Below, piece by piece: positions 11,406-59,400 of a DNA stretch of 64,000 nt. Under the pieces are notes generated by a model that saw nothing but the letters and a program-made list of their open reading frames with translations, was not told the DNA's origin and searched no databases. A program made the position numbers and the translations under genes. This DNA comes from Haliotis rubra (lineage: Eukaryota): contig NW_025766070.1 in assembly GCF_003918875.1 (NCBI RefSeq), positions 806,001 through 870,000 on the forward strand. The letters are read 5' to 3'. Each line of letters starts with the position of its first letter. The first letter of the stretch is position 1.

Positions 11406-14400
11406 GTAAGTCCTTCTTTGAGTGGATAATTTGTCTCATGAAATCGACAAGCTCATCTCCAGTTTTGAACAATTTCTTGCACTTTTGAATAAATTCTAAT
11501 CTCTTGACATTTAGTTTTTAGTTTCAAGGTGTTGACACATAATCAAATCCTGACATCCCGCATCACTTCTGTTTGATTGCTGTTCTCATTGTTAGCTAGT
11601 TTGAAATTGTATTCAACAGAAAACTGTAGACACTTTTAAGTATATGTGGACCATATTTGTTTCTTTAGCATTCTTTATGCTTAGTAGATTGACAAGGGGC
11701 ATGCTTATTAAATCCAGAGACAATAAATTTAATATGCTCTCAGAGATCAAGCTGGTGTGAACAATGATATTTTAGACATTGCTGGAACAAACATGTTCTG
11801 ACAATAGTCAATGTATACAAGAAAAATGTGCAATGTATACAAAAGATTAATGACTGCTATGTAGATTTTCATTCTTAGATGGGGGCCATATACATATTTT
11901 ACTGACAGATGGCCTGGAGGATAGGCAGAGTGAGCTTATAGGTGCAGGGCTCTGATTACTGTTTGTCAAAAATGTTTGTTGCTTAAGTTGGGTCAATGTT
12001 GTTGGCACTAGTGTGGAGGTGTAAGTGGATTCAAACCAACTACTGGTCACTGGTAGTACGTGTTTGTGGATGTAGCATGACAGACTGCAGAAACACTAAA
12101 TCTGTATGTACTTTAAAACAATTGACCTTTCTTCGTTCCAGGTAGCCCAATCTGGTCACAGAACATTGTTGTATGGTCATGCAATTCTTCTCAGACATCT
12201 CCATGGAAACATGGTGAGTTTTCATAGCACTTGTAAATTGTTGTCATTTAAACCATGAAATCATTGTCAGGACTCCGTATTTGTATACGGATGTCCTGTT
12301 GTCATGATGTGGTCAATATACATACTGCTTATAAACCATTGTCTAATGACCATGGAATATGTCAGTATGCAATGTTCTTCTAAACTGTCGTCATGGAAAC
12401 AGGATCGGTGTACATAGTGCTTGTGAACTGTTGTTATGGAAACATGGTCAGTGTACACAGTGCTTGTAAACTGTTGTTATGGAAACATGGTCAGTGTACA
12501 CAGTGCTTGTAAACTGTTGTTATGGAAACAGGATCAATGTACAAAGTGCTTGTAAATCATTGTTGTCTGAACATATTAATACTACAGCCTTCACTGCTTG
12601 AAACTTGATAACATCTGATGTCCAAGATATTTTTATTGATAACATCTGTCTTCATCATTGAAATGTTGACACCTGTTGGTGTCATCTTTGATTCTGCTCA
12701 CGTGTCAACCATCAGTGACGAGTGAACAGGGCTATTTACAGAGCAGTGCACAGAAACACGATCCTTGACACACTTTCAGTGGAACTTTTGTAAACAGTTA
12801 GATGTGCATTGATCTGGAAATTATGACTTATTGTGTGTTTCTGTTTTCAGTATCTCTCCTGTCTTTCAACCAGTTCCTCCAATGACAAACTCGCCTTTGA
12901 TGTCGGCTTGCAGGAAACTGCAATTGGTTAGATACATTTTACATTTTCTTGAAACATGAGAGTCGAAAATTGAAATATGTGACAATATGGCGCGCTTATA
13001 TTAGGAAAGCAAAAAAAGTAATAAATATATCTGAGTGTATGAATTCAAATATATTTAAACTATTTATATTTAATTTTGTAAAAACATTTTTTGGTATAAT
13101 TACAAATGACTTTCTAGTACAACTTCACTGAACTGTGTTAATGTTTCGATTTAAGTACACATTTTGTGGGCTACAATTTTAAAATTCTACAGGTGTGAAA
13201 TATTGTTTGTGAATGTTTACCTGCTGTGTTGCCAGGGGAGTCATGTTGGTGGACAATCCATCCCGCTTCCAAACAAAGATCTGAGGGAGAGAAAGTACGT
13301 GTTGGGGATGATCTCATCCTTGTCAGCGTGTCCTCAGAAAGATACCTGGTAGGTGTTGAAAACACAAAGACAAGACCATGCCTGTGGACTTCCTCTGCTC
13401 AACAATATCTGAACTTTGCATTATTGCAGATTTTTTAAGCAGATTTAAAAGTAAAATCATTCCTTGTGTTCACCTTTTTCTTCTGTGAAAAAGAACACAG
13501 TGTGCCTACAATATGTAATTTTATTGATTGAAAGACTTGGTTTTTTTTTTAATATTTAATTCATCTGAGTCTGATTTGCAAGTAAAGATGGCTGCTGATT
13601 ATCATCCTTGCCAGTTCAGATAAATGGAATAAGATCATCACAGAACAGTTGAGGCTATAATATCTGAAAACAGTTTGGCTATTTTATTAAAGTTATCGTC
13701 CAAAAAGGCAGGATAGCAAGGATTATTGTGGTTTGCTACTGAATAACTATATATCCGACCCTTTAATTGGATGTGTCATAAACTGACCTCCATGATGTCC
13801 ATGCGGCAGCCATGCTTATCTGCACTTCATTTACACAGGACTGTATGATATTTATCATGATACATAATATCATATTGATAGTTTACCATCTAATTTTGTT
13901 TTTTTGTTACGTTTCACACAGCCATATTCCAGCTATGTGATGTGGCCAGTAACAATTATTACCTGGGCCAGACAAACCAGTGATTGCTGTTGTTCCTAAA
14001 CCTGACCACCTGATCCAGTTGGTTGACTCTCCCAATAAGCATAGTTGTCTGCGAGTCAGTTCTGACCAAGAGATTCTTTGGATTTTACCATTTTGGCAGT
14101 TTATTAGTATTGTGCACTTGGAGAAAACAGTTCATTCATGAAGTTAACTGTTTCACTGTTTCAGCACATCGGCAGCGGCTCTGCAGTCATAGCATCGTTC
14201 CAGCAGACTCTGTGGACAGTGGTGCCTATGTGTTCTGGAGCTGTCAGGACAAAAGCCCTAGGTAAGACACAAGTGTTCATACTGATGCTTGTCATGGTCA
14301 ACACACTGCAGCAAGTAATCACATCGATGTACCCTGTGGCTTCCAGGACAAAATGTAGCAACCTTGAGGAACTCATCACACTGAAGGGGCGGTGGGGTAG

Positions 14401-56400: not shown

Positions 56401-59400
56401 TTTGCCTGGTTACAAAAATGATTAAATGTGAATGAATTTTTTGAGGTTCAGGATTGTTACATTGTAACAGATGTCTTGACATACTTTGCCATTAATATGT
56501 TTTGCAAAATTGTTCATAAAAACTGACGATACAGCCATTTTGGATGAAGAAATATCCTTCTTTGAGAATGTGCTATGGTCCTAAATTTGCTATTGTGTGT
56601 TTTGATCCATAATAATATCTGTGTGTTCTGGGTTTTCAGTCGCTTTAGAACATTTTCCTGATTATCACATGAGCAATTGTAAAACATGCCACCAACTAAA
56701 GACAACGTTATCTTAAACACATGCCATAATCCAAGTATTTACAATGTTCTGTCTGACGCTTCTTGCCTTATTATAGCAACAGTAAACACTGTCATCCGAA
56801 AAGATATACTTCGACCATACATTTGTTGGTATGATTTATGGATAAAGTAATTTAAGTGACCCCATATTTATGATGATTTCATGTTCTTTCTGTTAATGGC
56901 TGGACTCTTCTGTTCAGATGCGGGCACTACTGACCTTCAAGGTGGTGGAGGAGGAAGAGGCTGACCAGCAGTGTCCGTGCCGCGAAGACATTCGCGAGTC
57001 TCTCCGCATTTTCCATGGAGAACTTCTGCAACACTGTGACATGCCCATATTCGAGGTCCCGGAAGAAAAGCCAATGGAGGAGGAGGATGTGCCAAAGAAC
57101 CTTAGCCTCAAGGACAAGCTGATGCTCATGGTGGGACTCAGCAAGGGTCAGCAGGAGAATATTGAGAAGGCCATCGATGATGGGCTTAAGCCAGGTGGGT
57201 ATAGTGACTCTATAATTTGTGGTAGTCACCATAGAAAAGGCCATCGATGATTGGCTTAAGCCAGGTGGGTAAAGTGACTCTATAATTTGTGGTAGTCACC
57301 ATAGAAAAGGCCATCGATGATGGGCTTAAGCCAGGTGGGTATAGTGACTCTATAATTTGTGGTAGTCACCATAGAAAAGGCCATCGATGATTGGCTTAAG
57401 CCAGGTGGGTATAGTGACTCTATAATTTGTGGTAGTCACCATAGAAAAGGCCATCGATGATGGGCTTAAGCCAGGTGGGTATAGTGACTCTATAATTTGT
57501 GGTAGTCACCATAGAAAAGGCCATCGATGATGGGCTTAAGCCAGGTGGGTATAGTGACTCTATAATTTGTGGTAGTCACCATAGAAAAGGCCATCGATGA
57601 TGGGCTTAAGCCAGGTGGGCGTAGTGACCCTATAATATATAGTTGCAGACATAACGATATACATTGGTGATTGTGTGATCAAGCCACGTGAGAATCAAGA
57701 ACATGGTGAATAATTCTATGGATATACAAGCTTTTTGTTACAATATATGCAAATGCTTGATAACGGTGTTAGCATCTACACCTAGACGCTGCATATATTG
57801 TAACAAAGAAGTTGTATATCCATAGAGCTATTGCCCTTATTCATCACACCAACTTCTAAATGCCACTTAGAGAAGGGGATCAAAACCTAGATTAATTGGT
57901 GGCTTCTTTGAGAAGACCATTGATGATAAGGGTAATGGTATTGCCTGAGACTGAGTTTGGTTTTACGCCGCTTTTAGCAATATTCCAGCAACATTACGGC
58001 GGGGGACACCAGAAATGGACTTCACACATTGTACCCATGTGGGGATTCGAACCCAGGTCTTCGGCGTGACGAGCCAACGCTTTAACCACTAGGCTACCCC
58101 ACCGCCCCGGTAATGGTATTGAGATGTGTAGTGTTTCTGAAAATAGGTAATGACTTACAAATGGTTGATTTCAGATTCCATGCAGAAACTCATAACACAA
58201 ACAATGGTGAAATGGTCAGAAGAGAGCTTCATCTCCAACCAGGACCTAGTGAGGGAGATGTTCAGCTTGCTCCACAGGCAGTACGATGGTATTGGGGAGG
58301 TAGGTTCTTTGTGCTGTTCTGGAAACGTAGTGCAGCATCTCTGTTCAAAACAAGTTGACTATATCTTTGAACTCATGAATGATACAAATATCCTTAAAAT
58401 GATATTTTGACTGCTAAGAGGGTAACAGCCTCAGAAACTAAATTGAAAAGATTAAATGTCTTAACGATACTTTGTCCTCATTGTCTAAATAACTGAATGT
58501 TACTTTCCCCAGCTGATGACCGCTCTGGACAAGTCCTATGTCATCAGCTGCAAGAGTCATGAGGATATCAACCTGCTGCTGAAGAACCTGGGCATCATCA
58601 GATCCCTGCTGTTGGTACAGGCTGGCCCGGATGAGGAGGAGCTCATGAAGACCAGTCTCAAGTAAGTAGTATGATCTCTTTGGCAAGCCTCAAGCAAATA
58701 GCAGGCTGTTGGTGGCAAGTCTTAAATAAGTAGCAGGATCTTCGTGACTAGTCCCAGAGAGGTACCAAGCCACATGTGTTTAGTCTCAGTAACAAGATCT
58801 TGGTGGCTAGTACTTAGCAGGCTATTTGTGGGTAATAGGTAGCTGAATGTCTGCAGAGTAGTCTCTAGTCTTTAGTCACAGATTTGACCACAAGGATTTC
58901 TCTGTCACGCTATGGGGCAGTGGGGTAGCCTAATGGTTAAAGCGTTGGCTCGTCACGCCGAAGACCCGGGTTCGAATCCCCACATGGGTACAATGTGTGA
59001 AACCCATTTCTGGTGTCCCCGCCGTGATGTTGCTGGAATATTGCTAAAAGCGGCGTAAAACCAAACTCAGTCAGTCAGTCAGTCTGTCACGCTATGGCCC
59101 AAACTGTAGTTAATTTATGATCTTTTATGTGTTTGTCAAGTATTTACCATTTGGTTCCCTTTCTTTGTGTAGGAAGATATGTGTAATACAAATAATCTGA
59201 AATAGGAAACTTCTGAACTGATTGTTGAGGATGGTGGAGTAGCCTTGTAGTTAAAGCACTCATTGGTCAGCCAAATATCCACATTCAATTCCCCACATGG
59301 GTACAATGCGTGAAGCCCATTTCTGGTATCACTTTGCTTCGATATTCCTGGAATATTGCTAAAAGCGGTGTAAAACTATACTAAGTGACTCACTCAATCA

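Follow-up and report, generated by a model that had tools for sequence, protein, structure and literature searches.

Junction-spanning minisatellites in a ryanodine receptor gene of the abalone Haliotis rubra

Why would a single gene carry tandem arrays built on its own splice sites, and do such arrays fall on exon–intron junctions more often than chance would place them there? We asked this of a 64,000-nucleotide stretch of the Haliotis rubra assembly GCF_003918875.1 (contig NW_025766070.1, positions 806,001 to 870,000; hereafter the window), whose + strand holds the N-terminal half of a ryanodine receptor (RyR) gene at 11301-63172, with 51 exons, 50 introns and 100 junctions. Junction-spanning minisatellites have so far been curiosities in a few human and some amphioxus genes, without an explanation for their junction preference. 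An initial annotation of the window, made from the sequence, had placed about 10 splice sites of this gene inside tandem duplications and had offered two readings: a junction-biased duplication process, or arrays of decoy sites, tolerated or selected, that could tune RyR output. Our analysis suggests that the arrays are most probably junction-spanning minisatellites of the "mirage" type, fast-evolving by-products rather than a device, which are tolerated because the exon-adjacent site is the one chosen.

Junctions of the gene and their tandem copies

The identity of the gene and the positions of its junctions come from several lines of evidence. Proteins encoded in the window carry Pfam MIR, SPRY, RIH and junctional solenoid (Jsol) domains, which mark a ryanodine receptor, and in tblastn comparisons with full-length RyRs, insect RyR residues ~54-2411 match window positions 11301-63172. 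The closest reference protein was an insect RyR with 57% identity; a search of representative proteins gave distant RyRs only, and a homology search seeded with insect RyR returned insect proteins only, with no closer reference. The gene model is based on distant homology and frame continuity: donors and acceptors were placed by the GT/AG rule, by phase and by their fit to the protein alignment, and all 100 junctions were fixed without reference to repeats. Donors are given here as the first intron base and acceptors as the first exon base.

The coding sequence (CDS) has no stop from 11301 to the end of exon 40902-40996, which joins in phase to the large exon 46986-47797, and none over 47316-63172 if a 22-nt second copy (49366-49387) is left out; the whole CDS of 11301-63172 is open once two small assembly frameshifts are set aside. 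Homologues of exon 46986-47797 reach identities of 49% or less, and single-exon homologous proteins of other mollusc-like genomes span this exon in one frame, which fixes the acceptor at 46986 and reveals an additional G near 47315. Exons 22857-23046, 23666-23876 and 26112-26271 are matched exactly by RNA contigs, and the three exons that lie between 23666-23876 and 26112-26271 have a total length that also matches exactly. Taken together, the open CDS, the in-phase joins and the RNA contig matches make the 100 junctions well founded, and every site named in the initial annotation proved to be a true junction of this gene model.

Repeats were located by Tandem Repeats Finder (TRF) and self-BLAST of the window, and array copies were placed by exact cores. 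In an echo test that is blind to arrays, each of the 100 junctions supplied a 40-nt probe with the junction at its centre, which was compared with its own adjoining 400 nt of intron and with ~480 distant windows. Ten of the 100 probes outscored every distant window, and these were exactly the ten sites picked out at first reading. The alignments show that nine of these echoes cross the junction (donors 12214, 26521, 50633, 51403, 57195 and 58662; acceptors 26112, 40902 and 48238), as true copies, in tandem or nearly so, that take in the exon edge, the splice signal and the intron edge. The tenth site, acceptor 46986, has an intron-only duplication that ends 8 nt before the AG, and a further donor that had been put forward as possible, 23047, has an intron-only 31-nt repeat (echo p = 0.26). 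We denote the nine junction-spanning cases, all on the + strand, E1–E9 in their order along the gene. Six arrays were called by TRF, arranged head-to-tail with periods of 32-83 bp and 3.6-10 copies.

Three donor arrays retain high identity between copies. E6 (50594-50876; TRF 47 bp × 6.0, 100% identical) repeats 39 nt of exon and 8 nt of intron without filler, and its authentic donor is the first (intron start 50633). E3 (26470-26964; TRF 63 bp × 7.9, 97% identical) repeats 51 nt of exon, GTGAGT and a 6-nt filler, giving eight CAG/GTGAGT donors (the slash marks the splice point), with the first again being authentic (intron start 26521). E8 (57167-57643; 70 bp × 6.7 by TRF at 57167-57636, 97% identical) repeats 29 nt of exon and 41 nt of intron, the intron part including 20 nt of filler that make up a 10-nt inverted repeat together with neighbouring intron; here, too, the first donor is the authentic one (intron start 57195). 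The other donor cases are older or interrupted. E1 (12203-12556) consists of decayed copies of junction 12213/12214, with ~11 nt of exon and 32 nt of intron per unit, of which a block at 12377-12556 was re-amplified (TRF 43 bp × 4.2); its echo score is 23, against a null maximum of 14. E9 (58654-58876) consists of old, decayed ~32-bp copies of junction 58661/58662, the best of which (58718-58756) is 28/39 identical and most of which have no GT; its echo score is 16-17, against a null maximum of 12. In E7 (51370-51794), 50 nt across donor 51403 are repeated at 51745-51794 (88% identity), 375 nt downstream, with ~325 nt of unrelated insert separating the two copies.

Acceptors show the same arrangement. 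E2 (25560-26159) is built on an 83-bp unit of 36 nt of intron and 47 nt of exon, with 4.4 fresh copies called by TRF at 25797-26159 and older copies decaying upstream; the authentic acceptor is the last copy (exon start 26112). E4 (40566-40913) was called by TRF at 40568-40913 as 32 bp × 10.3 or as a 96-bp super-unit × 3.6, keeps TTGCAG/GGATCGCAACTT in every third unit and likewise ends in the authentic acceptor (exon start 40902). Both host introns are mostly array, with E2 occupying most of intron 25545-26111 and E4 occupying 85% of intron 40507-40901. E5 (48120-48254) has two copies, 87 nt apart, that align over 48 nt with 85% identity and cover the acceptor cluster 48238/48244/48247. As an observation in its own right, positions 48232-48247 hold three in-frame acceptor AGs inside 9 nt (CCCCCAG/TGTCAG/CAG/GAAG), a tandem acceptor that could add or drop 2-3 residues.

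The units had been described as unrelated in sequence, 22-109 bp long and ranging from perfect to heavily decayed. We found them to be unrelated, and identity within arrays falls from 100% (E6) to about 70% (E9), with GT or AG lost in older copies (E1, E4 and E9); the measured range of unit length is narrower, at 32-87 bp. The location of the junction within the unit varies, the exon part measuring 8-51 nt and the intron part 8-41 nt, so that the junction is not a breakpoint. A shared motif or hairpin was sought across units; an inverted repeat was found in E8 only, and the splice consensus was the sole common element. The filler pattern (none in E6, 6 nt in E3 and 20 nt in E8) would be consistent with a first duplication that involved end-joining repair and with unequal exchange thereafter. 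Donor arrays extend downstream and acceptor arrays upstream, so that the exon stays intact, just as first reported; this is a geometric necessity of any junction-spanning tandem duplication.

Placement of the arrays relative to chance

We compared the placement of the arrays with a random expectation. Each array was collapsed to one unit, the GC-rich insert of the gene was removed, and the chance that a unit of that length covers any of the 100 junctions was calculated for each array over the 43-kb span, with any 1-nt overlap counted as a hit, which makes for a generous null. Of the 14 TRF arrays, five cover a junction, where 1.55 would be expected (P = 0.011). Among arrays with at least three copies the count is 5/8 against 1.11 expected (P = 0.0013), rising to 6/8 (P = 7.5e-5) if the donor-12214-derived block 12377-12556 is counted, and either count upholds the earlier statement that most multi-copy minisatellites of the window overlap a junction. 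In this gene, junction arrays are about 3-4.5 times commoner than random placement predicts. The junction probes gave a similar result, with 9/100 scoring at least 16 against a far-window rate of 0.66% (P = 3e-8).

Could the overlap still come from chance and ascertainment in an exon-dense gene, where a junction occurs about every 430 bp? When all weaker and two-copy events are included, the expected number of junction matches rises to an estimated ~3 against 9 observed, and this too is unlikely by chance; the significance depends on the event set. A second point in favour of chance comes from the orthologous RyR region, which we found in two mollusc-like genomes (L001 and L003). These loci have many intronic local repeats and only two small junction echoes, and this frequency (2 of about 36 junctions) is not clearly different from 9/100. 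On the other side, P stays at 0.001-0.01 under every event set tried (in part by estimation), the junction-probe test was run blind to the arrays, and the 1-nt criterion favours the null. We therefore think it improbable that there is no real bias. The excess at junctions is real in this gene and lies mainly among expanded arrays; its cause is unexplained.

Both echoes in the mollusc-like loci are at donors. The L003 echo pairs 1839-1856 with 2140-2157, 301 nt downstream (17/18 identity), and the L001 echo pairs 16516-16559 with 16637-16679, a decayed 44-nt copy 121 nt downstream. No multi-copy junction array was found in the RyR regions of L001 or L003. Junction echoes thus occur outside this genome as well; large arrays may be confined to it.

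A division by copy number offers a hint about the excess. Multi-copy arrays are junction-derived in 7/9 cases and two-copy events in 2/13 (Fisher P = 0.007, for a split made after the data were seen), which points to a bias in expansion or persistence rather than in birth. To this extent the earlier proposal of a junction-biased duplication process was borne out as an excess within this gene, with the emphasis shifted from the making of duplications to their growth or survival. One way to account for it is a junction-linked mutational bias, under which boundaries favour the expansion or persistence of junction-bearing repeats; it would add a cause to the by-product explanation and would not replace it. 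Candidate causes include co-transcriptional occupancy by the spliceosome or U1 together with R-loops, polymerase pausing, and nucleosome-phased Okazaki-flap errors at exon edges. We hold such a bias to be possible, and put it forward tentatively. Junction arrays exceed random placement, and the excess sits in arrays of at least three copies; selection alone would act against extra splice sites, so the excess points to mutation; and filler of the kind left by end-joining repair lies between copies in two arrays (E3, and E8 with its inverted repeat). Set against this, the junction does not coincide with the unit boundaries, so that the breaks did not occur there; the events are few, and the division by copy number was chosen with the data in view; and the paucity of echoes among the many intronic repeats of the two mollusc-like loci indicates that the bias is not universal.

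It is conceivable, though doubtful at present, that the junctions of this genome are hotspots of repeat expansion or persistence rather than of birth, tied to transcription, splicing or exon-edge chromatin. One gene with 100 junctions and ~22 local repeat events was enough for a measurable excess and a hint of expansion over birth. If the excess holds genome-wide, it would imply a mutational process coupled to exon edges, one that would lengthen introns and leave a store of cryptic splice sites, and that could contribute to the evolution of introns and exons. Should junctions indeed be hotspots, mirage arrays would amount to a mutational signature across the genome, by which introns grow longer and new splice sites are seeded, and abalone would offer a tractable system for studying a phenomenon first described in amphioxus.

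Splicing, tolerance and decay of the arrays

How could such arrays arise and persist at the junctions of a gene? Under the by-product explanation, a short local tandem duplication (30-90 bp) would by chance take in an exon edge and the adjoining intron edge, and the duplicated unit would then be amplified by slippage or unequal exchange. A tandem duplication across a junction would always leave one copy contiguous with the exon. The spliceosome would take this exon-adjacent site (the first donor or the last acceptor), leaving the mRNA unchanged and the other copies silent in the intron. The array would later decay or be interrupted by mobile elements, and some arrays would by now make up most of their intron. 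We infer both this route of duplication and expansion and the neutrality of the arrays, whose features fit rapid neutral turnover.

Contigs of other samples, aligned over 22800-28799 and so covering E2 and E3, bear on the choice of site. Two runs of related organisms contain spliced contigs, which identifies them as RNA. In the spliced RNA contigs of both related species the exon starts at 26112, the last acceptor copy of E2. At E3, RNA contig coverage of the bin 26400-26599 corresponds to the 74-nt exon 26447-26520, and there is none over 26600-26999, where the distal donor copies lie, indicating that the first donor (26521) is used. No distal-site transcript was seen at E2 or E3 in the assembled RNA contigs of the two related species, in which rare isoforms would be missed, as assembled contigs drop them.

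The same region provides a check on the assembly. The arrays might have been made or inflated by the assembler, and the gene does have small errors or odd alleles elsewhere (the extra G near 47315 and the frameshifting 22-nt duplicate at 49366-49387). However, a further DNA sample of this organism and one of a second species, both independent of this assembly, yield unitigs that break at the edges of E2 and E3, with k-mer depth raised about 4-fold over E2 and >10-fold over E3. For these two arrays, the breaks and the raised depth show that they are present beyond this assembly and are older than the split of the two species, and we give an assembly artefact almost no credence. Copy numbers of E2 and E3 probably differ between the two species; the k-mer depth of E3 in another species is far above the 8× expected from the assembly, although contig depth is not a copy count.

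These arrays are the mollusc counterpart of amphioxus mirages and of human junction variable number tandem repeats (VNTRs) such as F7 IVS7. Mirages, as presented in the reports concerned, are amphioxus tandem repeats across exon–intron boundaries that were named in Adh3 and later described in globin, troponin C and PGBD5 genes (PMC3087553, PMC3902484); splicing is undisturbed, and their origin was called unclear (PMC3087553, PMC3902484). The arrays described here resemble those of Adh3, the globins BflGb6 and BflGb9, troponin C and PGBD5 in that the unit spans the exon–intron boundary on the donor or acceptor side. In amphioxus, the units are tens to about 160 bp long, several cases occur per genome, copy number varies and splicing is normal (PMC3087553, PMC3902484). 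Our cases differ in that the host is a mollusc and not a cephalochordate, in that nine occur in half of one gene, and in that an excess over chance has been measured.

In the human VNTRs of F7 IVS7 (37 bp × 5-9), LMNB2, PDGF intron 4, CBS IVS13 and IFI6 (6-16), the first monomer spans the donor (PMC1557585), and identical pseudo-donors follow the real donor as they do here. Only the most upstream of the 5-9 identical donors of F7 IVS7 is used, the pseudo-donors being functional but silent (PMC1557585); they never compete because selection proceeds 5'-to-3' from the exon (PMC1557585). Use of the exon-adjacent site at E2 and E3 matches these F7 IVS7 experiments (PMC1557585). The human cases are isolated and all donor-side, whereas in the abalone RyR gene donor and acceptor arrays recur together and the choice of site was read from contigs. 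Papers on mouse PAR and earthworm metallothionein were considered as further precedents and set aside, as they are not about junction repeats.

A different kind of precedent is the gain of introns when an exon segment containing AGGT is duplicated in tandem (the Rogers model; Zhuo 2007; Gao and Lynch 2009; as cited in PMC3087553). The arrays share with it the appearance of extra splice signals near exons, and arrays can form most of an intron (E2 and E4). They differ from it in that existing introns are lengthened and none is created: all arrays lie in pre-existing introns, and the exonic duplication at 49345-49387 has no usable GT-AG pair and causes a frameshift only.

The alternative of selected decoys holds that low, tunable use of distal sites leads to a premature stop and nonsense-mediated decay (NMD), so that RyR output would be set by a heritable rheostat, the copy number. 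As first reported, every distal site in the five fresh arrays does give a premature stop, and in this the arrays resemble NMD-coupled unproductive splicing by poison exons or decoy sites. This outcome is, however, expected from random intron sequence: three of the five fresh unit lengths shift the frame, the in-frame 63- and 96-nt units have stop odds of about 0.64 and 0.78, and the joint chance that all give a stop is about one half. The consensus is kept at distal donors (CAG/GTGAGT eight times in E3), and a second species also carries E2 and E3. Against selection, only authentic sites appear in the assembled transcripts of two species (E2 and E3), and the identical downstream donors of human F7 do not compete. 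Arrays occur at all stages of decay, with unrelated units that range from perfect to decayed and distal GT or AG lost with age in E1, E4 and E9, as expected of neutral turnover rather than of a maintained function; we found no sign of selection keeping the decoy sequence in them. Unlike NMD-coupled unproductive splicing, the arrays gave no evidence of distal sites being used, conserved for that purpose or regulated. We consider selected decoys very unlikely. Of the earlier pair of proposals, tolerance is thus upheld by the use of exon-adjacent sites 26112 and 26521 in the transcripts of two species, and the selected rheostat found no support. Nothing so far suggests that the arrays matter to RyR biology.

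Several observations weigh against the reading of the arrays as tolerated by-products. Neutral, random placement predicts no junction excess, and the observed one needs something extra; as selection against extra splice sites should deplete arrays, the excess calls for a cause beyond this explanation. The nearest pseudo-donors are not always silent: human IFI6 and CBS use the two nearest ones (PMC1557585), so that silence cannot be assumed for every array, a point that also favours selected decoys. In addition, the statistics come from one gene with ~22 events, some classified after the fact, and the splicing evidence comes from 2/9 arrays (E2 and E3) through assembled contigs of related species.

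Control repeats and other features of the locus

Two sites were rejected as junction arrays. At 46986 (46402-46978, +), a 110-nt intron-only duplication (46402-46512 versus 46871-46978, 80% identity) is interrupted by an insert of 358 nt that has a hairpin terminus; besides this duplication, there is one generic acceptor-like 20-mer (17/20) 108 nt upstream. At 23047 (23047-23580, +), the 31-nt repeat (23047-23077 versus 23550-23580, E = 0.02) contains no exon part and flanks a high-copy interspersed repeat.

Three repeats on the + strand served as non-junction controls. The largest, at 55398-56063 (TRF 174 bp × 3.9), is unrelated to neighbouring junctions and is preceded by a (TCCG/TCTG)n leader, as are arrays in other mollusc-like RyR loci; on account of this leader, it is probably carried by a mobile element. 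The second, at 30623-30736 (TRF 18 bp × 6.2), is intronic and unrelated to acceptor 30777. The third, at 18616-18814, is an intronic 99 bp × 2.0 duplication (99% identical) that stops 23 nt short of acceptor 18837, to which it bears no relation. We compared all three (18616, 30623 and 55398) with their neighbouring junctions as possible decayed echoes and found them unrelated.

Leaders of the (TCCG/TCTG)n type precede 150-175-bp tandem arrays in this window and also in a second mollusc-like genome, and they are similar to the (TCCG)n that follows an element whose terminus is a hairpin (CCCCCGCC...GCGGGGG). The sequences concerned lie at 46513-46870 and 55366-56063 of the window, at 4670-5436 of L001 and at ~15910-15925 of L003, and together they suggest a mobile element bearing its own satellite. 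Very high-copy interspersed repeats lie at 23100-23500, 24400-24800, 27400-27600, 58920-59084 and 59234-59399, with contig depth 10^3 to 10^6 times that of their flanks. They combine a tRNA-like head (GGTTCGAATCC...) with a GATATTGCTGGAATATTGCTAAAAG core and look like a family of short interspersed elements (SINEs). An Rfam tRNA match at 58039-58097 (-) adjoins another SINE-like core copy at about 57999.

The window contains no Ns and has ~38-41% GC, except for an insert of 59% GC at about 32-37 kb. This 6-kb insert (31872-38065, in intron 31473-38105), a candidate DIRS1 element according to the first reading, contains open reading frames (ORFs) of 464, 358 and 286 aa. Its long ORFs (32.8-37.3 kb) gave no PDB match and no significant Pfam match, the 464-aa ORF giving a weak match to Pfam LAP2alpha only (E = 0.0015, under the family cut-off).

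Two irregularities interrupt the reading frame. In exon 46986-47797, an extra G in a GGGG run (~47312-47315) shifts the frame between ...FRRSKSR and DPSPN...; an intron was ruled out as the cause, as there is no credible GT-AG pair, and the extra G is probably a homopolymer error of the assembly. Exon 49313-49521, a highly conserved RyR exon (PPRL motif), contains a 21/22-nt tandem duplication (49345-49387), whose second copy, the 22 nt at 49366-49387, causes the frameshift; this copy is due either to an error of assembly or to a genuine frameshift allele from the same short-duplication process as the arrays. With regard to annotation more generally, junction arrays can mislead gene predictors and assemblers. 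Finally, insect RyR residues 619-647 match both exon 21431-21564 and exon 22252-22583, and the CDS is open with both, so these exons represent either ~30 extra residues in this species or an alternative exon pair.

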